Of a stretch of 64,000 nucleotides of DNA, positions 3,601 to 63,491 are shown piece after piece. How positions within the stretch are numbered: position 1 is the stretch's first letter; each line of letters begins with the position of its first letter. Source of the stretch: Bugula neritina (lineage: Eukaryota; Animalia; Bryozoa). The DNA is taken from contig OZ037773.1 of NCBI GenBank assembly GCA_964035545.1, positions 3,315,751 to 3,379,750 of the forward strand, given 5' to 3'. The notes under the pieces are model-generated. The model was not told the origin of the DNA, did no database searches, and was given only the letters and a program-made list of their open reading frames with translations. Both the position numbers and the translations under genes were made by a program.

Positions 3601-6600
3601 CTGTCGGTGAGATAGTTGAGATTCTAAGATGTCTCCTACATATTGGTTGCCAAGTTACAGTTTATTATAGGAGAAGCCTTGGGTTCCTTTACTCGGCGAG
3701 GAGGGAGAATACACATTCATTGGTAAAGTTCCTGTGGAGGAGAGAGTGCGGGCAGCTAAGCCCCCTCTCTCTAAAGAGGAGTGCGAAGTCCTCCTTCTAA
3801 TTGGTCTGCCGGGAGCCGGCAAGTCACACTGGGCGGTCAGAACTCAGCGCGACCTGCCAGAGAAGAGATACTATGTGCTGGGGACCAATAACATCATCGA
3901 CAGAATGAAGGTGGGCAGTCCTTCCCCGCCCTATTTTATACTACCCTCACCCCCTCTCTCTATATTCTACTACTCTCTATATTATACTACCCTCTATGTT
4001 CTACTACTCTCTATATTCTACTGTGTACAGGTAGAAGGAGTACCCAGGAAGAACAACTACGCTGGCAGATGGGACGTGCTGTTTGACCAAGCCAATGACT
4101 GTCTGAGGAAGATGCTGGAAACAGCCACTCGCAGATACAAGAACTACATTCTGGATCAGGTGTGTGTCTGCTCTCAGTCTAACTATTCGAGTAGTTCTAC
4201 TAGTTAACAGTGCTGAGTGACTATTCCCAGCTAATTGCCAGTATATCAACAGCTCTCTTGTGTCTTCACTGCTCCTTGTCTCTGGGTATCCAGTCACTCT
4301 ATCAATCTGCTAAGCTGAGTGCTGGTTGCATTGCAGGTGTAAGTACGGAGTATACATTGTAGGTTGTGTAGGTAAGTACGGTCACAGACACGTCGTCTCT
4401 TCGGTGTAAGTATGAAGGTAAGTGTAGTAGTATAAGAGGGGTGGTTGAAGGTACATTGTGGGTTGTATTGGGGGACGGAAGGAGCTAGATAGTAGGTACA
4501 GTACATACTCTTAAGTCAATGCAAAGTATTATCTCTGTTTAAATGCGAGTCAATGGCAGCAAGCAAGCATTACACTCTGAAAGGACAGCTTGGATCTTGA
4601 ACTTCACAGAATAAATGCTAAGGCATTAGCTTCTCTTGAGTTACTAATATTATGTTCTTGAAACTGGCGTATTTCTCAACGTGTGTAAATAATAAATGCA
4701 TTCCAATATCAATCTAGTAGTAAACTTAGTGTGAGGCCCCTCAGTGAATTCTTGGCCCTGTTGTACGCTTGATTGTAGGTCACACGCTCTTCGGTACAAG
4801 GTAAGGTCTCACTGTTTCAAGAACACAGCCAGTTTTTATGCCCCGGCCGACCCAACTAGCTCTTGTATAGCCACTGCACTTGTCATACAACACTCACTAT
4901 AACTGCTCTTGTTTCTTCATTTGTTATAAACACGCAGACCAATGTATACGACACTGCTCAGAGGAGAAAGATGCGTCCTTTTGTTGGATTTAAACGAAAA
5001 GCTGTTGTTGTCTTGCCCACTGACAAAGTGTATCGTGAGCGAATTACAAAACGCACAAAGGAGGAAGGCAAAGAGGTGCCTGAAACAGCTGTTCTTGAAA
5101 TGAAAGGTAGACATATAGTTGAGCTGACAGTTGCTAGACCATAGGTGGGTGTGTGGCGCAGATTGGCAGCGTCTAACTGCTGCCGAACTGTGCACGCCAA
5201 CAGGGAGTACCATATTAGCTCTTTCTCTCTCAGCTTGTTTGCGGAAAGGCTGCGGTTATCTTGTTGCCGTTTCCTGTGACGTAAACAGCTGCTTTGTTCA
5301 GTAATATCCTATGCGGGTGGCTGCTGCCGAGCAGCCGGGGTCTTGCTGACTCCGGACAGCTCGCGGCGCCCCCTGGTTCTGTCGCCTGTCATCTTGCGTG
5401 TCTTATTTACAGCCAACTTCTCGCTGCCGACAGCACCTGTAGAAACAGTGCTGAACCCTGAGGCCAACGAGTTGGCAGCAAAGGAGGCAGAAGAGGAGCG
5501 GCTGGCCAAGGAGAAGAAGCAGCTGGAAGAGAAGGAGGCGGCTGCTGAGAAAGCGGAGGCTGCTGAGAAAGCGGAGGCTGCTGAGAAAGCGGAGGCTGCT
5601 GAGAAAGCGGAGGCTGCTGAGAAAGCTGAGGCTGGTGAAAGTGAGCAAGTCGAGTCAGCCATGGAAGAAACTGAAGAAAAAAAGGAAGAGGTGGAGGTAA
5701 AAACAGAAGCGGCAGTGCCGGAGACGAAAGAGGAGGAGACTGAAGAGAAAGCTTCTGCTGACGCTGTTGAGACAGAGAAGGTGAGTGAAGTAGCAGTAGC
5801 TCGTTACTAACCAGTCACCGTTACATGTTACCTACCTGAGGGCTCATCTGTCGAAGATCAAGTGGTTAAAACTAAATATCTCTGTGTGAACTCAAATTCT
5901 GGTTTTATCAAAACTGTTAGAAATTCCCTTTTGTAGCCGACACAGGTAAAAGAAGAAGCAGAGAAAATGGATGAAACTTCGTCGGAACAAACAGCAGGTG
6001 CTGCAGAGTCTGCACCAGCGGCAGCTGAAGAGAAAGACACAGGTGTGTTGTGTTACTATACACTATCATGTGTTACTATACACTATCATGTGTTACTATA
6101 CACTATCATGTGTTACTATACACTATCATGTGTTACTATATACTATCATGTGTTACTATACACTATCATGTGTTACTATACACTATCATGTGTTACTATA
6201 TACTATCATGTGTTACTATATACTATCATGTGTTACTATATACTATCATGTGTTACTATATACTATCATGTGTTACTATATACTATCATGTGTTACTATA
6301 TACTACCATGTGTTACTATACACTATCATGTGTTACTATACACTATCATGTGTTACTATATACTATCATGTGTTACTATATACTATCATGTGTTACTATA
6401 TACTACCATGTGTTACTATATACTATCATGTAAAGTCGCTGTACTGGTTTTCTTAGCCACAGAGTCTGAGAAAGCTGCCGAAGGAGACAGCAAACCTTCC
6501 ACCGACTCAAAAGAGGCTGAAGCTAAGACGGAAGAGAAAAAAGAAGAACCGGAACAGGTAGGCTGCAGCTTCATATTTCACAATCCAGCTTTATAGTCAG

Positions 6601-8580
6601 TTGTAAAACTTCATATACTTCACGTCTCATGTCACTCACTGCCCATCCCTGTCACTCACTACCTCCCCCTGTCACTCACTACCTCTCCCTGTCACTCACT
6701 ACCCCTTCCTGTCACTCACTACCTCACCCTGTCACTCACTACCTCTCCCTGTCACTCACTACCCCTCCCTGTCACTCACTACCTCTCCGTGTCACTCACT
6801 ACCTCTCCCTGTCGCTCACTACCTCTCCCTGTCACTCACTACCTCTTCCTGTCACTCACTGCCTATCCTTGTATCATGCAGGTGTTTGATGAGATAATGT
6901 TCACAGAGTTGAGTGGAACTGTAGCTCGGGATCTCTTAGCACAGTATGTGAAGGAAGGGCAGGCAAAGTTTCCCCCGGGAAGTAGAAGGTTCAGACGTGA
7001 AGACCGGCGTATTGGTGAGTGTCTTGTGCTCTGATGAACTGAACACAATCTGTATGTTTCCACGTGTAACACAGTCTGTATACATGTGTAACACAGTCTG
7101 TATGTTTCCACGTGTAACACAGTCTGTGTGTGTTCATATGTAACACAGTTTGTCTGTTTCCACGTGTAACACAGTCTGTATGTTTCTGTGCAGAGAGAGG
7201 GGGTTACCACAGAGGGAATGATTACCGGTACCACCAGCATCACTATGACAACAGAGACAGGAGAAACAGCTATGGCTACAACAACAGAGGCGGTGGAGGT
7301 GTGTATTACGTTGTGTAGTTCTCAGCACCTGCCTCATCCTTTTCATTCTGGCACTTCACCTCATTCTTGGCCCCTGAAATAATGATTTGTTTGTCTTCTA
7401 GGCTATGGTGGCAGTGGTGGATATGGCGGAGGAAACAGATATGGTGGCAGTGGTGGATATAACCAGAACAGAGGGTATGACAACAGAAATAGAGGCGGAT
7501 ATGGCGGAGTGAGTATCCCCTACTTAGCAAGGTTTTGCTAACTCAACACCTGCTTCAATTGAAACAACAAGATGTGTCTCACCGATATTTTCAACTGCGA
7601 ATGCCTTCAGTTTTGTGTGTATTTTGATATTTATCGTAATAGGCATGTAGACAGACAGTGTATTCTCGCCTGATTGTAGGGTGGTGGATACAAGAGTGGT
7701 GGTTACGGAGGGGGTTATGGCGGTGGCTGGGGAGGACAAGGCGGTGGCTGGAACAACCGAGGGGGTTGGAGTGGCGGAGGAGGGGGTAACAACTGGGGAG
7801 GAAACTACAACAGTGGAGGTTAGATTATTAGAGCATGTGATGTCACTAGTCAGCTTACATATACTCTGTAGTCATGTGCCTCCTCACTGATACCTTCTAA
7901 TGTTGAATGGTGAGTTAAACTTTCTACCTGTTGTGTCAAGTTTCTATGTGTACCGTGTGTTTTGGCTATCCATTAGGTTACGGTGGTGGCGGTAGAGGAG
8001 GATATGGTGGCAGCAGTCACGGCAGCGGCGGAGGACACGGTAACTATGGATACGGGAGGTGAGTCGGTCTGCATTCAATTAATGTGCTTATAGTAGATAA
8101 GTGTATGTATAACCGTGTACTCTCAAAGCATAGATAAATTCCTGTCTCATGTTACCAGTGTTTCAGGCCAGACACTATGCTAGACTGATCTGTCCAAAGG
8201 TCTTTATATAAGCACCGCATGGCCTACTGGCAGTAGGTGCACCTCAACCTCTTGGACACACCTCTCTAGATAGATAGACACACCTCCTTAGATAGATAGA
8301 CACACCTCCGCTGTAGCAACTACTCTGTGATGTTTTGGTCATACCTGGCTATCTGTTCTGCTTTAGTTACTCCATTACCTTCCGTTTCTGTTTTGTATTC
8401 ACTTTGACATGGCAGTTATCTGCACAACTGGTGTTTAATTGTAGTAAATATTATAGCGGCAGTGGTGGAAGCAGCAGTGGAAACTGGGGTAGTGGAAGCG
8501 GATCTAGCTCCTCGTGGAATCAAGGCAGCGGATATGGGAGTGGATATAACAATTACTCCAGTGGGGGTGGAGGTGCGTAA
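686..8580 (+). CDS. HNRNPU: Heterogeneous nuclear ribonucleoprotein U / U-like (SAF-A family), about 1036 aa: SAP - acidic linker - SPRY - P-loop NTPase (AAA_33-like) - RGG/Gly-Tyr tail
   Basis: Exons, all GT-AG with total length 3111 nt in frame: 686-821, 953-1077, 1266-1548, 1652-1741, 2157-2332, 2548-2664, 2822-3034, 3409-3564, 3671-3910, 4031-4159, 4938-5106, 5413-5780, 5937-6042, 6457-6557, 6882-7014, 7194-7298, 7402-7508, 7680-7818, 7977-8058, 8445-8580. Motifs: SAP domain [36 protein letters not shown]; [35 protein letters not shown]; Walker A GLPGAGKS; NYILDQ|[13 protein letters not shown]; EMK|ANFSLP; RGG/GY tail. HNRNPU versus HNRNPUL1 orthology is not resolved. Confidence 0.92.
4330..4425 (+). 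promoter_or_regulatory. Cluster of intronic 5' splice-site motifs (candidate decoy/poison exon) in hnRNP U intron 10
   Basis: GTAAGT at 4339, 4372, 4406 and 4418. Acceptor-like YAG ending at 4336, 4362, 4371 and 4387. Confidence 0.55.
5107..5412 (+). other. GC-rich, highly structured spliceosomal intron (hnRNP U intron 11)
   Basis: Three long imperfect hairpins (about 5145-5201, 5231-5291, 5315-5373), CATAGG/CCTATG pairing (5140-5145 with 5308-5313), and end-to-end pairing TGACAG (5125-5130) with CTGTCA (5386-5391). Confidence 0.65.
6045..6431. repeat. 20-bp minisatellite (tgtgttactata[c/t]actatca), about 19 copies, filling hnRNP U intron 13
   Basis: Direct 20-nt periodicity. It explains the spurious [20 protein letters not shown] ORFs. 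Confidence 0.95.
6629..6865. repeat. 20-bp minisatellite (gtcactcactacctctccct), about 11 copies, hnRNP U intron 14
   Basis: Direct 20-nt periodicity ending just before the 6881 acceptor. Confidence 0.93.
7050..7186. repeat. Degenerate 22-26-bp tandem repeat (ctgtatgtttccacgtgtaacacagt), hnRNP U intron 15
   Basis: About 5 visible units. Confidence 0.8.
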
Positions 8581-9423
8581 TATGTTGTGAAGACTAGAAT
8601 ATAGGGGCTAACAACCCTGCTGCCTACATGCCTTTCAAATATATTCTATACTTGTATTAAAATGGCTACAAGTTTGCTAAGATGGAGGATGTGTTAGTAA
8701 AGTGGAAATCTTCTGTGTGTTACAGGCTACTAGTTCCTGGGGAGAGAAAACTCTTTACGGATATCTACTGAAAGTGCCGTCAGACAGTCTAGACCTGATA
8801 TTATGTATTCACCTTTCATTCTCATACAGTAGTTATGAGGAATAGACAACTCTCATTTATCTTGTATATAGTACTCATTTTTCTCTCATATTCTGTTGTA
8901 TTGTCATGAAACAGTAAAATGTTTTTAAACTGTATTCTACCACTTTTGGTATAGAATTCAGTACATGTATGCAATGGCGTCAGCAGCTTGTAATATAATT
9001 ATCTTTTACTCCCTTAATGTATGCTTATTTTCCAAATGACAAAATGAAATTTTCTTGTTTTTCAATTTATATATCAAATGTGTCATTGTGATTATATCTA
9101 AAAAATATAATTTACCAGCTAATTAGTCACACTAGTAGTCTTCATTGCCACCTGGAGTTAGGTTTCATGTCAGACAAAGCTGGGGTTGTTCAAGTAGCAA
9201 AAAGTAATGTCACACCTGTGATAGACAAAATCCTAGCTCGATAATTTCGAAACAGCATTGCAGATGAAAGCATTAGGCAAAAATCCACATTACAAGTAGG
9301 CAATATAATATGGCTGCAATAAATGGGCAATCGAGACTTATAGGGGTAGAAAAACTTAGTTAATTAAATGATGGGTCAGTTCAATGTTAACGATATATTT
9401 AAAATCTACATCAGAACAGTTAT

Positions 9424-9462
9424 GAACTCTTTGAACACTATATGGTGGCCCTAAAAAGGGCC
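9424..9462 (-). terminator. Histone 3' stem-loop and downstream element (H3)
   Basis: Minus strand GGCCCTTTTTAGGGCC (9447-9462), then ACCA, then CAAAGAGTTC (9424-9433). Confidence 0.95.
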
Positions 9463-9486
9463 TTTGGGGTTGTTTGGTTACGTAAT

Positions 9487-10489
<1,003 letters not shown>

Positions 10490-10516
10490 ACTACAGACTC
10501 CCATTTAAACCCCAAC

Positions 10517-10558
10517 GGCCCTTTTCAGGGCCATCCATTTTTTACCAAAGTGTTGTTC
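10517..10558 (+). terminator. Histone 3' stem-loop and downstream element (H4)
   Basis: GGCCCTTTTCAGGGCC (10517-10532); AAAGTGTTGTTC (10547-10558). Confidence 0.95.
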
Positions 10559-11245
10559 AAGTTCTCTTCTCTCAATTAATTTGATGTGCATTAATGTATA
10601 TGATCATAGTGCGTTGTCCGCCAACTCTAATTTATATCTATTATAAACTCATTATTTAAAAATGCTGTTATAGAATGTGTGCCAGAAAAATAAGTAGATA
10701 GTGTTTGTAGTTGTGTTGTTTTGATAAGGTTATGAAGTTCTATCTTGCGTACAGAACTTGTAGTACAGAGAGTGAGACTGATAGCTAAATGTACTGTAAT
10801 GATTTCATAGTTTTATTAGTTGGAAGAACAACATTTTTCTGAATTGAGCATACCATATGATGGAATAATTGGATTGTAATGGTGCGTTAGCCCTAAGGAG
10901 TACGGACTGCAATACATCAATAAGTTTGAATACAAGGTATAGAACTATATTAACCGCTAAAATTGCTATTCAATTATATTTTATAAGGTTATGGATCAGC
11001 TGCACACTCCGGTACAGCACAGTTGGCTACTAGTATTAATTAGTACAACAACTAGTACAAGTTTCTGATCACTATGGCATTAAAAGCAATTGATTTCAGG
11101 CTAGGGCAAATCTTTACATGTAGCCAGGTTAAAATTACTCTTCAATAATGAAGGCTCAGTAACCTCAACAGATAATTCCAAAATCCAGAAGGGATTCATT
11201 GAATAGAAGCTTACAGAATTATTTAGAATAGTAATGATGCATAAA

Positions 11246-11285
11246 GAACACTCTTTGAGGGAAATTGGTGGCCCTGAAAAGGGCC
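11246..11285 (-). terminator. Histone 3' stem-loop and downstream element (H2A)
   Basis: Minus strand GGCCCTTTTCAGGGCC (11270-11285), ACCA, then CAAAGAGTGTTC (11246-11257). Confidence 0.95.
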
Positions 11286-11310
11286 GTTGGGTTTAGGTGG
11301 TTTTAGGTAT

Positions 11311-11688
11311 TTAGGCAGCAGCTTTCTTAGTCTTGCTGGGCAGCAGCACAGCTTGGATGTTGGGCAAGACACCACCTTGGGCTATGGTGACACCTCCTAA
11401 GAGTCTGTTCAACTCTTCGTCATTTCGGATGGCCAGCTGCAGGTGACGAGGAATAATTCTGGTTTTCTTGTTATCTCTTGCAGCATTTCCTGCCAACTCC
11501 AAAACTTCAGCAGCTAAGTATTCCATCACAGCTGCAAGGTAAACTGGTGCACCAGCTCCAACTCGTTCAGCGTAGTTGCCTTTACGGAGCAATCGATGGA
11601 TTCTTCCGACAGGGAATTGCAGTCCAGCCCTTGAGGACCTAGTCTTGCTCTTTCCCTTGGCTTTTCCTCCTTTTCCTCGTCCAGACAT
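11311..11688 (-). CDS. H2A: Histone H2A, replication-dependent
   Basis: [20 protein letters not shown]..; intronless; stem-loop present; no SQ[E/D]Y motif, so not H2A.X. Confidence 0.99.
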
Positions 11689-11998
11689 ATCGAATGTGGT
11701 AGTTATGGTAACAGTTGTAGTATTAAACAGATGCTTAATAGTGGGGTAAAGTATAGAGCGCGCGTTTTTATATGTAAATGAGGTAGTTAAAAACTATCCA
11801 ATCAGAGAACAGTATGTTTTAACGGACGTCTTAGTGGAGTCCATTAAAAAAGTCGCGCCTATTACTACCGTGAAGATTATTAAATTTTTGTTGACGAATG
11901 AAACGCGTAGAACTATCTAATTTGCATATAGTTTCATATATAAACTCACGCAACTGCGGTAGTTTGCATTCAGTGTTGATAATCACAAGCTATTCAAC
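11689..11998. promoter_or_regulatory. H2A/H2B bidirectional promoter with H2B octamer
   Basis: TATA for H2A (about 11765-11773, minus strand), CCAAT at 11798, shared 16-mer at 11821-11836, octamer ATTTGCAT at 11920-11927 immediately upstream of the H2B TATATAAA (about 11937-11944). Confidence 0.8.
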
Positions 11999-12367
11999 AT
12001 GCCTCCCAAAGTTAGTTCAAAAGGTGCCAAAAAAGCAGGAAAGGCTAAAGCAGCTCGCACTGGCGACAAGAAAAGGAAGAGGAAAAGAAAGGAAAGCTAT
12101 GGGATCTACATCTACAAGGTTTTGAAGCAAGTGCATCCCGACACTGGGGTGTCCAGCAAGGCCATGAGCATCATGAACAGCTTTGTCAATGATGTCTTTG
12201 AAAGAATTGCAGGTGAAGCATCAAGACTTGCCCACTACAACAAAAGATCCACCATTACTAGCCGAGAGGTCCAAACTGCTGTGAGGTTGATTCTTCCAGG
12301 AGAATTAGCCAAGCACGCTGTATCTGAGGGTACCAAAGCCGTGACCAAATACACTAGCTCCAAGTAA
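11999..12367 (+). CDS. H2B: Histone H2B
   Basis: [21 protein letters not shown]...[10 protein letters not shown]; intronless; divergent from H2A. Confidence 0.99.
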
Positions 12368-12391
12368 ATTCTGCAAGCTCCACAACCCAAC

Positions 12392-12432
12392 GGCCCTTTT
12401 CAGGGCCACCAAATTCAGTTTAAGAGTTGTTC
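12392..12432 (+). terminator. Histone 3' stem-loop and downstream element (H2B)
   Basis: GGCCCTTTTCAGGGCC (12392-12407), ACCA, then TAAGAGTTGTTC (12421-12432). Confidence 0.95.
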
Positions 12433-13026
12433 TTAAATTAATCTCGCAATTTGCACAAGCTAATTGCTTGTTTTTAGATGCATGCGTATACCATTGTATC
12501 TTAAGTTTTCCACATTTACTGAGATATTGCCAATAGCAGCTGGCAAACTTAAATTATTGCATTTTAGGTTTGCAATTTCTGCTTTTATTCTTGATACAAA
12601 TTATACAGCACTGAAACTAATTAATCATGCACTTTCTTAATTGACCCCTTGAGGGCTTCTGGGATTTTTGTAAACTTCATAACATTTACAGCCATCATCC
12701 GATGTATGGTAAATGGGTAGAAAATATCCACCCAATCGTAGACTAACGCACATCTTCATGCAGAATTTATACCCAGTAATTAGAAATGCTGCATAAGTAA
12801 GTTAATTTTGAAAACCTCCAAGCCTTAAATAGAATCTGTACACTCACAAACTAATGAATGGCTAAGCTAGTGCACACATAACAAAACCTGAGTTATATTT
12901 GATATTATTTTTATGGTATTACAATTGAGCAAAACATGATTAATGTACAAACTACAAGTATTACAAATATATTACATCGAATAATATACTGACAAGCCAA
13001 AAACAGAGTATTCAAAACAGAAAAAG

Positions 13027-43346: not shown

Positions 43347-59145
<15,799 letters not shown>

Positions 59146-61064: not shown

Positions 61065-63168
61065 GACCTCTTCTCTGGTCTCTCAGTGTTCTTCTAAAGG
61101 CAATGGTTTTTATTATTTTTAAAACAGAGGCTTGTAGACTAGTTTTATATGCAAGTAGTTTTAAAATATAACTATAATATGTAGGCTCTATGAAATGTTC
61201 CTTGAAGCAAATTTGAAATAAAATTTGCCTTAGCAAAGTGCCAGCTTGCTCTTGATTGAATAAGAAAACATAAATACTTATAAGTTCCATATAACTTTTA
61301 ATGAAAGAATGGTATATATAAAACCACTATAGTAATACTGTTCTATGCTAATTTCGAGTTGACTATTAACAGCAATAAATTTCCTTATCTAAGAATACAA
61401 AAGTCAAACCCATGCCTCCATACTCACCTGTCTTATTAAAGCTGTTAGCAATGACAATCTAGATAGATTATACAGCATACCAATGTGACTTTTCAACAAG
61501 TTAGCTTTAATAATCGATTTATTATTTGTATTTAAAGCAAATTTAATTCTAATCGGCTTTCCTATTTGATGTTTAATCAATTGTTTAATCAATACTAAAG
61601 CATTTGTTTGGATTGGCACCAGAAGGGGTTATTAATACCTAATAACTCTAACTTAATCAAGTGAGTTTGAATAACCACAGCCAGGTATTATTGTATTTGA
61701 GTTAACTATAAAACTGAATGATGCAAGGCCTGCGAATCAAATCGTTGGGCAGTCTAGGAGTTTGCAAAAATAATAACAAGAAGGAGTTTACTTTGAAGCA
61801 AGATCAGTCCAAAGGATATTAAATGTCTGCCTTTGAACCCTTTTGTTGGAATATTTTCTTGTTTCAAATATCAATCATACCGATATTTTGCTTTCAGAAT
61901 GCTATATATAATAATAGACAGTTATATTGCATCATAGATTGAGGCTGTAATAATATACAATATGTGACCAGTATAGTACACTCACATATTATAATAATAG
62001 TATAGTAAGTATAATTAGCTATGTACACTAACTATACTTGACTATAATTATTATAATGGATATTAATATTAGTGTTATGCTGAGTATATACCAACATATA
62101 ATATATAAATAACATAACAATAGGTACTAACATATATATTTATAGTATATAAATACTAATAACTAATATGATACTTTAATATAACACATAATTGTACCTT
62201 TAGCAAATAATTGTAGCATTTACAGTTTCAACTAGTATACCATAACCAAATTAACAAATAATGCTCTTAATGCTTAGGTCTCACTCTCTAAAGCCTAATT
62301 AAAGGTTTCACTTGGCAGCCTTTTTTTACAGGTTCATACCTGGGCTTCACTAATTATTGATCTTAGCCCAGTTTCCTAAAGTAATTGCAGCATCTGCCTG
62401 AGCTATTTAGCATTTGCCACTTGCCTGCACATAAATGCAGCTTCTACTTGTTAGACAACACTTACACACTCACTCAAGTTTATAGCAGTTATCCCTGTAA
62501 GAAACCGATGTGATTGAAAGGGCATTTTAAAGCAGGCTAAGGACTCATACACTTACAAACTAGCATAATAAATATCAAAACACAAAGAATGGCAAATTGT
62601 GCTCATGAAAGGTGCAGAAGCAAACTAACTAATAACTATCACACTAGCACCTACCTTTCAATTGGTGATATTGGCCTTCCTATCAATCACACAGACTGAA
62701 ATATAGAATTTATAATTCAAAGGTAGTGCACACAGCATATGCTGTCAATCTATTATAATGTCATGATCAGCAAATATCAATTCTTTATCTGCAGGCTTAT
62801 AAAAACATACAAACCCTATTGACCATCAACTACTCTGATTGAATCTATGAAAATCAATATATAGCCTACTTGTAGGCTGTTGAAATATTCCTACCATACT
62901 GAGTATATACTTGTTCCACATTGCAAACTCATGAGAGCTAAGGCTATATTTTCCCATGTCAGAATATCCCAACATAGAGGACCTTTACCTCTATCCCTAA
63001 CTTCCATTATAATATATTACAGAGCTGTAGATCTAACACACCTCACTACACTTTACATAGGATAGCTGTACAGGAATGTAGATCTCTCCATTTCTATCTA
63101 CGCCAGAATATATTTAATATGCCTACTATTTTATATACATATATAACATTATATATATATTTTTTTTG

Positions 63169-63202
<34 letters not shown>

Positions 63203-63307
63203 GTATATATATAATATATATATATATATAATATTATAATATAATATTATTATCAAAAAAAAATATATATATAATGTCAAAGATAAGATAACTCTATTTT
63301 CATCATT

Positions 63308-63491
63308 TATCACATAATATATTAACATAAAATCTATTCTAACTACCTATCACATGTTATATTAACATAAAATCTATTCTAACCATCTATCACATGGTAT
63401 ATTAACATAAACTCTATTCTAACCATCTATCACATAATATATTAACATAAACTCTATTCTAACCATCTATCACATGGTATATTAACATAAA
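63308..63491. repeat. 40-bp tandem repeat, about 4.5 copies
   Basis: Unit atcacataatatattaacataaaatctattctaaccatct. Confidence 0.92.

Follow-up and report, generated by a model that had tools for sequence, protein, structure and literature searches.

The window analysed here, a stretch of 64,000 nucleotides (64 kb) of Bugula neritina contig OZ037773.1 (positions 3,315,751 to 3,379,750, forward strand), contains an hnRNP U-like gene whose product has SAP, SPRY and P-loop NTPase domains, an acidic region and an RGG tail. Intron 11 of this gene (5107–5412; all positions are those of the window, and the gene lies on the + strand) combines an exceptional predicted fold with selective retention in two lineages, a conserved weak donor and a conserved CAGGNAGUA element. 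We favour, with a probability of about 55%, the view that it is a clade-conserved retained, possibly detained, intron that sets how much productive hnRNP U mRNA is made. A first-pass annotation, made from the sequence alone, had anticipated unproductive processing in this RNA-binding-protein gene, with a message stopping before the RGG tail as one outcome. That expectation was borne out by retention of the intron, which was found in three RNA studies and in a second lineage.

Intron 11 of an hnRNP U-like gene is selectively retained

The RNA data were assembled contigs and unitigs of public runs from three studies (X6, X4 and X1). Contigs of all three carried the exact 5106>5413 joint, at depths of 338, 470 and 542, so that the 306-nt GC-rich intron placed here by the first-pass annotation is real. 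Its boundaries read ..GAA ATG AAA G|GT at 5106 and AG|CC AAC TTC at 5413, giving EMK|ANF in phase 1, with GT and AG at its ends. The GC content of the intron is 0.54, compared with 0.37–0.43 in the other introns of the gene. Upstream lie exon 10 (4029–4159), intron 10 (4160–4937, 778 nt) and exon 11 (4938–5106, 169 nt, TNVYD..LEMK). Exon 10, which ends ..LDQ in phase 0, was delimited by translation and by the joints 3908>4029 and 4159>4938, present in RNA contigs of the three studies; exon 11 is matched by a unitig (4935–5106) in three runs. Exon 12 (5413–5697) begins ANFSLPTAP.. and contains the acidic repeat region. Its start is set by the 5106>5413 joint, and its end was read from the GT at 5698, without RNA confirmation.

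Besides the productive joint, each study yielded a contig running from exon to exon over the entire intron 11 (5077–5437), at depths of 96, 110 and 58. This corresponds to retention of roughly 22, 19 and 10%, values that must be taken as rough, resting as they do on unitig depth, which is a poor measure, and on junction unitigs whose shorter side is just 27 letters long. Introns 8 and 9 were without a single contig in the RNA of X6, X4 and X1. The intron 11 signal therefore represents neither DNA nor bulk pre-mRNA, and contamination by DNA or a general pre-mRNA origin was rejected on these grounds. Translation into the retained intron reaches an in-frame TAG at 5142–5144, 12 codons into the intron (open reading frame [ORF] 4863–5144) and ahead of the acidic region and RGG tail; exons 5413–5697, 6882–7012 and further exons lie downstream of this stop. 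Intron 11 thus has the features of retained introns that were examined: it is short and GC-rich, it has a weak donor, and its retention introduces a premature stop upstream of exon junctions.

Two further unproductive forms were detected around exon 11. Contigs spanned intron 10 at depths of 259, 159 and 44 (4130–4964 in X6 and X1, 4200–4964 in X4), beside the spliced joint 4159>4938. In addition, a 4159>5413 joint that skips exon 11 was present at depths of 80, 75 and 69, roughly 10–18% of the junction depth in the three studies. Skipping shifts the reading frame, because 169 nt is not a multiple of 3, and the resulting frame reads Q|PTSRCRQHL followed by a stop, nine codons into exon 12. This skipping is a clearer unproductive splice form than that proposed in the first-pass annotation, the use of a masked acceptor inside intron 11.

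Intron 11 has an exceptional predicted fold

The minimum free energy (MFE) of intron 11 was -126.5 kcal/mol, as compared with -105.3 +/- 4.8 kcal/mol in dinucleotide-shuffled controls (z -4.4), and none of 100 shuffles equalled it; repeat shuffle runs gave z -4.3 and -4.1. The fold predicted by the first-pass annotation does, therefore, exceed that of shuffled sequence. The antisense strand gave a z of only -2.4, and 16 of the 101 pairs of the MFE structure are G-U pairs; the fold signal is therefore at the RNA level and on the sense strand. Across 105 non-overlapping 306-nt windows over the 64 kb, the mean z was -0.23 (sd 1.28), and only two AT-repeat windows were lower than intron 11. These two (46513–46818 and 63037–63342; GC 0.16–0.17, z -4.7 and -5.8) are probably palindromic AT repeats. 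By comparison, z values for six further introns of the hnRNP U gene, three of them with approximate boundaries, were -0.1, +0.7, -1.1, +0.2, +0.1 and +3.2.

The MFE structure consists of three hairpins closed by a helix that joins the intron ends. Hairpin H1 (5145–5201; core 5156–5193, loop UCUAAC) has 22 bp and -30.3 kcal/mol, with a core pair probability of 0.94; H2 (5231–5291) has 20 bp and -25.2 kcal/mol, with pair probabilities of 0.95–0.99; and H3 (5315–5373, which takes in the 5328–5363 hairpin of the first-pass annotation) has 24 bp and -40.5 kcal/mol, with a pair probability of 0.89, and carries a branch-point-like CTGAC at its tip (5346–5350). The end-joining helix pairs 5109–5141 with 5374–5403 over 26 bp, includes the TGACAG/CTGTCA pairing, and has a mean pair probability of 0.77–0.89 by MFE and partition function. 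Its 5' arm spans donor positions +3 to +8, which are predicted to be unpaired with a probability of 0.25, and its 3' arm extends into the pyrimidine tract, part of which is buried as well. The CUGAC at the tip of H3 is the only good branch-like site and lies 63 nt upstream of the acceptor AG; reading of the sequence revealed no good branch site within 40 nt of the 3' splice site. The three hairpins and the end pairing had all been described in the first-pass annotation and were recovered with probabilities of 0.77–0.99. An additional CATAGG/CCTATG pairing, said to enclose the first two hairpins, was absent from both the MFE and the centroid structures.

The first-pass annotation had interpreted this fold as an RNA switch in which H2 masks an alternative acceptor, CTTTCTCTCTCAG (5221–5233, AG at 5232–5233), so that unfolding would give an isoform (..ACLRKGC..CFVQ, then a stop) that is truncated or subject to nonsense-mediated decay (NMD). 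The acceptor and the TAA stop at 5302–5304 do read as described, and at the base of H2 its AG has a pair probability of about 0.95. A switch is not what the calculations indicate: the centroid is near the MFE structure, one architecture dominates with helix probabilities of 0.77–0.99, and the partition function of intron 11 contained no two well-populated, mutually exclusive folds. Nor was the acceptor seen in use. The 5106>5234 joint was absent from the three RNA studies, which show four other joints around exon 11, or five in all, though the weaker skipping joint was seen at depths of 69–80; contigs can miss rare forms, and very low use is possible. The acceptor is also missing from the orthologous introns of relatives, and the substitution T5230G breaks its pyrimidine tract in a second haplotype (see below), which every public RNA and DNA run except the reference carries. 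Masking of a poison 3' splice site is thus largely refuted, and we regard it as hardly credible.

A weak donor and a conserved U1-complementary element

The donor of intron 11 (GTAGAC, 5107–5112) is weak and lacks a G at +5. Duplexes computed with the window genome's own U1 5' end, which starts AUACUUACCUGGC, had predicted energies of -13.2, -8.8 and -11.3 kcal/mol at the donors of introns 8, 9 and 10 and of -6.5 kcal/mol at that of intron 11, the weakest of the four.

Inside the intron, at 5201–5209, lies the 5' splice site-like element CAGGGAGTA, which occurs once in the 64-kb window. Its clade consensus, CAGGNAGTA, was found within intron 11 of six lineages whose introns are otherwise unalignable, and one base shorter in a seventh (L013). 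The element lies 23–118 nt from the donor, and directly after the first hairpin in the window and in two of the related lineages (L009 and L014). It resembles a 5' splice site with a spoiled +2 position; a true GU, in CAG|GTAGTA, was present in one lineage only (L024). The predicted U1 duplex of the element ranged from -9.5 to -14.0 kcal/mol, a level reached by no more than 2% of the window's 18-mers, and was better than that of the authentic donor in every lineage tested. A U1 match at this level somewhere within 306 nt is expected by chance, and it is the conservation that makes the element stand out. These properties fit a decoy donor, as judged from predicted duplexes, and do not amount to proof of one. 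No conserved decoy acceptor was present upstream of CAGGNAGTA. The idea that CAGGNAGTA is a co-evolving duplicate of the authentic donor was rejected, similarity within lineages being no higher than that across lineages (permutation P 0.30).

Other donor-like sequences occur in the region. At 5140–5155, right after the retention stop, CATAG|GTGGGTGTG is a GU-bearing pseudo-donor with the best U1 complementarity in intron 11 (-13 kcal/mol); no junction from it was seen. Intron 10 contains four copies of GTAAGT within 4339–4424 (at 4339, 4372, 4406 and 4418), and clusters of perfect GTAAGT or GTGAGT lie ∼400–650 nt upstream of exon 11 in L009, L011, L013, L014, L016 and L024. The sequence of these clusters points to conserved decoy donors or to a putative poison micro-exon; none of the listed RNA joints used the intron 10 GTAAGT sites.

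The orthologous intron is strongly folded in most lineages and retained in a second one

A protein-database search with the ORF covering exon 11 gave 41 matches, which were ORF-style gene calls on genomic and transcript contigs, and 26 of these were aligned. The position of intron 11 was the same in all 26, the translation reading ..LEMKG before diverging. In 24 of the 26 the next codon was R or S (EMKG[RS]), which corresponds to a GTAG donor. Complete orthologous introns of 201–344 nt were obtained from eight lineages, using fetched contigs and one pattern scan of metagenome contigs.

The intron was strongly folded in five of the eight lineages, with z values of about -2.9 to -5.7: -5.5, -5.7, -4.8 and -3.2 in the L009 group, -2.9 and -3.0 in the L014 group, -3.1 in L011 and -3.8 in L016. 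Two other introns of L009 had z values of -2.4 and +0.1. The sense strand folded better than the antisense strand in most lineages. A common layout was apparent in the window, L009 and L014, in which a hairpin of 19–26 bp is followed by CAGGGAGUA and then by two hairpins of 20–26 bp. Within the L009/L014 clade the 5' arm of the third hairpin is formed by the block TTTTATGACGTCACTG, which contains a cAMP response element (CRE)-type palindrome, TGACGTCA (L009:2520–2545, L014:903–917), and is invariant except for one T in L009. The window has TGACGTAA at 5279–5286, in the 3' arm of H2.

Four Joint Genome Institute (JGI) metatranscriptome contigs of the L014 lineage (L049, L041, L014 and L042) proved to be transcripts. 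The 4057-nt L049 has a 633-codon frame that runs from the 5' untranslated region (UTR) and SAP domain through exon 11 (exons 1–11). It then continues into a 291-nt orthologous intron with an early stop (GRPPQTTTSHPPLVI, then stop), followed by a 439-codon frame from exon 12 through the RGG tail to its stop and by a 3' UTR. Comparison of L049 with genomic L009 and with the window gave exon blocks, and the match to L009 was unbroken from exon 11 through the intron into exon 12. L041 is built alike, all other introns having been removed and an intron of 295 nt kept, while the L014 and L042 transcripts keep introns 10 and 11. In this second lineage, intron 11 is the one intron left in otherwise finished mRNA.

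The end-joining helix admits another interpretation, that the structure aids splicing. Helix and hairpins would bring a weak donor, a distant branch point and the acceptor effectively closer together, and retention would be the residue that persists despite the fold. End-bridging stems that aid splicing are established for yeast introns. The MFE structures of the window, L009, L013, L016 and L024 pair donor-proximal bases with the last 1–18 nt of the intron, and the lack of a good branch site near the 3' splice site of the window agrees with such a role. Burial of donor positions +3 to +8 and of part of the pyrimidine tract should, on the contrary, interfere with U1 and U2AF. The end pairing was assessed without a statistical control, and it was absent in L014, L011 and L040. 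We consider this interpretation rather improbable.

Evidence for selection on the structure is mixed

Outside the L009/L014 clade the orthologous introns could not be aligned, apart from the CAGGNAGTA motif, and the covariation analysis was therefore confined to that clade. In the L009/L014 alignment, all 16 of the changed consensus pairs still pair, six of them through changes on both sides, and the consensus energy had a z of -6.8 relative to 200 column shuffles.

Two haplotypes provided a second comparison. The reference haplotype differs from a second one by 14 substitutions over the 306 positions of intron 11 and by none in exon 11. The second haplotype was present in every public DNA and RNA data set besides the reference's own (L003–L005 and L050–L053; runs X1, X4 and X6), and the two may represent cryptic lineages within a species complex. 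Intron 11 of the second haplotype had a z of -4.8, and its MFE of -124.4 was lower than that of random mutants of the same type (-112 +/- 5.6, P 0.02). In the second haplotype H2 was shifted in register yet kept, with 24 bp and -28.4 kcal/mol. Divergence between the haplotypes was 4.6% in intron 11 as compared with about 2.7% in intron 10, which indicates no extra constraint on primary sequence; differences were nevertheless absent from the first 78 nt of intron 11, from the element and from the last 34 nt. The pair of changes C5328T and G5363A, which affects bases paired in hairpin 3 by the first-pass annotation, was rejected as compensatory, both changes being CpG transitions and the reference MFE structure pairing these bases otherwise.

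Several results weigh against intron 11 being a dedicated, conserved retained intron. The number of compensatory pairs in the L009/L014 alignment was no higher than that obtained by RNAalifold on shuffled columns (P 0.29), and effectively only two lineages were compared; the count was consequently rejected as proof of structure. The reverse of the mutant test just described was not significant (P 0.15). Of the 11 substitutions that the second haplotype has at paired sites, eight disrupt pairing in the reference MFE structure, and the haplotypes share only 51 of about 101 pairs, the second haplotype having refolded. In three of the eight lineages the fold was unremarkable (L013, z -1.3; L024, z -0.6; the distant L040, z -0.5). 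L049 and L041 came from a search whose pattern fits unspliced forms only, so that no retention ratio is available for that species, and the retention percentages in the window species are rough, as stated above. Finally, a weak donor, short length and high GC are by themselves typical of retained introns.

Much of this would be expected if intron 11 were simply an incidental slow intron, retained merely because its GUAGAC donor is weak and it is short and rich in GC, the fold being a by-product and the retained transcripts noise that is cleared by NMD. A donor that is the weakest of the four measured, the short, GC-rich, weak-site profile usual for retained introns, the turnover of exact pairs between haplotypes, the covariation count and the three lineages with ordinary folds are all in keeping with it. 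It accounts less well for the recurrence of strong folds in five unalignable lineages while sister introns are near 0, for the consensus fold of the L009/L014 clade, for a 9-nt element kept inside a fast-evolving intron, and for retention of the same intron in fully spliced mRNA of a second lineage. We therefore hold an incidental slow intron to be unlikely, while giving it appreciable weight. What has been kept seems to be a compact, hairpin-rich fold, and not a fixed set of pairs, and the evidence for selection on the structure of intron 11 is mixed.

The same comparisons bear on whether the intron hosts a product of its own, such as a small nucleolar RNA (snoRNA), a microRNA (miRNA) or mirtron, a stable intronic RNA, or a DNA regulatory element such as the CRE-like TGACGT. 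Stable hairpins of 38–60 nt, the conservation of TGACGTCA in the L009/L014 clade, the occurrence of TGACGTAA in the window and the moderate folding of the antisense strand would suit one or other of these. The hairpin arms, unlike those of miRNAs, carry five substitutions between the haplotypes and are not conserved in relatives; C/D and H/ACA boxes were lacking; the RNA contigs of the intron are continuous with both exons; and the sense fold is the stronger in most lineages. A hosted product is very improbable on this evidence. No Rfam family matched intron 11, the best hit being mir-449 with 17.9 bits against a threshold of 60, and searches with the gathering score or with E 10 as cut-off returned nothing above noise, so that a known RNA family was rejected, in agreement with the exclusion check proposed in the first-pass annotation. 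The mir-449/34-like string in H1 was rejected as a miRNA, since it runs across the loop and the hairpin is too short to be a pre-miRNA. A transposable element, or miniature inverted-repeat transposable element, with terminal inverted repeats was likewise rejected. Both the entire intron and its 25-nt terminal arm are single copy in the 216-Mb genome, and the end helix also uses G-U pairs; the multi-copy element that the first-pass annotation had named as a refutation did not materialize.

A model for retention of intron 11

The reading of intron 11 as a conserved retained intron can be set out as follows. The weak GUAGAC donor and tight fold would cause the intron to be removed more slowly, or less fully, than its neighbours, leaving it in a considerable fraction of mRNA that is otherwise complete. 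The end-joining helix covers positions +3 to +8 of the donor as well as some of the pyrimidine tract and could thereby hinder or time splicing, and H3 may also slow removal by holding the branch-like CUGAC. The internal U1-complementary element would perhaps act as a decoy donor. Because several exon junctions lie downstream of the retention stop, the retained message could stay in the nucleus, undergo NMD, or yield a SAP/SPRY/NTPase protein without the acidic region or RGG tail. Added to intron 10 retention and exon 11 skipping, this would make the exon 10–12 region the place where the output of productive hnRNP U mRNA is set.

A more elaborate version is conceivable, in which the fold and the U1-complementary CAGGNAGUA form a dedicated sensor. 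By binding the structured pre-mRNA, hnRNP U (with its RGG tail) or a partner would stall a U1-engaged, non-productive complex, and the protein's own mRNA would be kept as an unspliced reserve. Intron 11 would then be an autoregulatory detained intron conserved across the bryozoan clade, of a type so far undescribed for hnRNP U, with the intron 10 GTAAGT clusters and exon 11 skipping belonging to the same control module. We rate this as quite unlikely. Feedback of the hnRNP U level, or of another factor, on intron 11 splicing is speculative, and nothing in the data supports it.

Other features of the window

Intron 9 (3909–4028) is 120 nt long, stop-free and in frame, and is read through by ORF-style gene callers (P0001, 147 aa); no retention contig was seen for it. 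Exon 12 contains five repeats of an 18-nt unit coding for AAEKAE (5530–5620), of which ∼54 nt (three units) are apparently absent in L003, judged by the offset between BLAST segments. A further public run, X18, matched the region only in the exon 12 repeat. A histone gene cluster, marked by four histone 3' stem-loops that alternate in strand (9422–12433; Rfam RF00032, 35.7–39.6 bits), lies a short way downstream of the hnRNP U gene. A tRNA gene lies at 50320–50391 on the - strand (Rfam, 42.3 bits).

Comparison with known systems

hnRNP U (SAF-A) is dosage-sensitive in vertebrates, and to our knowledge how its level is set is poorly described. A targeted search of the open-access literature found no report of self-control of hnRNP U by intron retention or poison exons. 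The locus offers a compact case, with one 306-nt intron that has a strong fold, is retained selectively in two lineages and carries a short, conserved U1-like element. It also indicates that public assemblies alone suffice to follow, in a non-model invertebrate, retention accompanied by conserved 'foldedness' yet fast-changing pairs. Should the structure or the element prove causal, detained introns and decoy sites, catalogued mostly in mammals, would gain a lophotrochozoan example, and the locus would help to decide whether intron removal is timed by RNA structure as well as by splice-site strength.

In yeast RPL30 and RPS14B, the ribosomal protein binds a structure in its own pre-mRNA that involves the donor region; splicing is blocked, and dosage feedback results. 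The predicted structure of the hnRNP U intron likewise involves the donor region, and the difference is that protein binding is known in yeast while feedback by hnRNP U is only a hypothesis. The Caenorhabditis elegans homologue hrpu-1 is described as a regulator of alternative splicing coupled to NMD of other genes (PMC5563511).

Closer in outcome are the detained or retained introns of genes for RNA-processing factors, such as OGT intron 4 and CLK1, which are associated with nuclear retention or NMD (PMC5602073, PMC7261177). As in these, one specific intron of the hnRNP U gene is kept in otherwise fully spliced transcripts of the polyadenylated type and introduces a premature stop; it is short and GC-rich with weak sites, and its host encodes an abundant nuclear RNA-binding protein. 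A very strong predicted fold, on the other hand, is not a defining trait of the class, and the hnRNP U case is lophotrochozoan. Nuclear detention, signal-dependent release and NMD sensitivity are known for the class, whereas intron 11 was examined in assembled contigs.

Retention of SF3B1 intron 4 and of the OGT intron is controlled by decoy exons or decoy splice sites (PMC6097662, PMC7373989, PMC12017769). The hnRNP U intron shares with these systems a conserved splice-site-like element within the retained intron, with predicted U1 binding above that of the real donor, and it adjoins a retained intron 10 with conserved clusters of perfect GTAAGT. It differs in that the known decoys are complete cryptic exons, in introns mostly >1 kb, whereas hnRNP U intron 11 has a lone predicted pseudo-donor, usually without GU and with no conserved acceptor upstream, in introns of 201–344 nt.

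The role proposed for structure has its nearest counterpart in BRD2 and BRD3, in which defined complementary regions govern a poison exon and were tested by mutagenesis (PMC10789245). In both cases the proposal is that base pairing inside the pre-mRNA determines the balance between productive isoforms and isoforms with a premature termination codon, and that lineages differ in the structures that serve the same end. They differ in that the hnRNP U intron is predicted to be compactly folded over its whole length, and in that the outcome is its retention.

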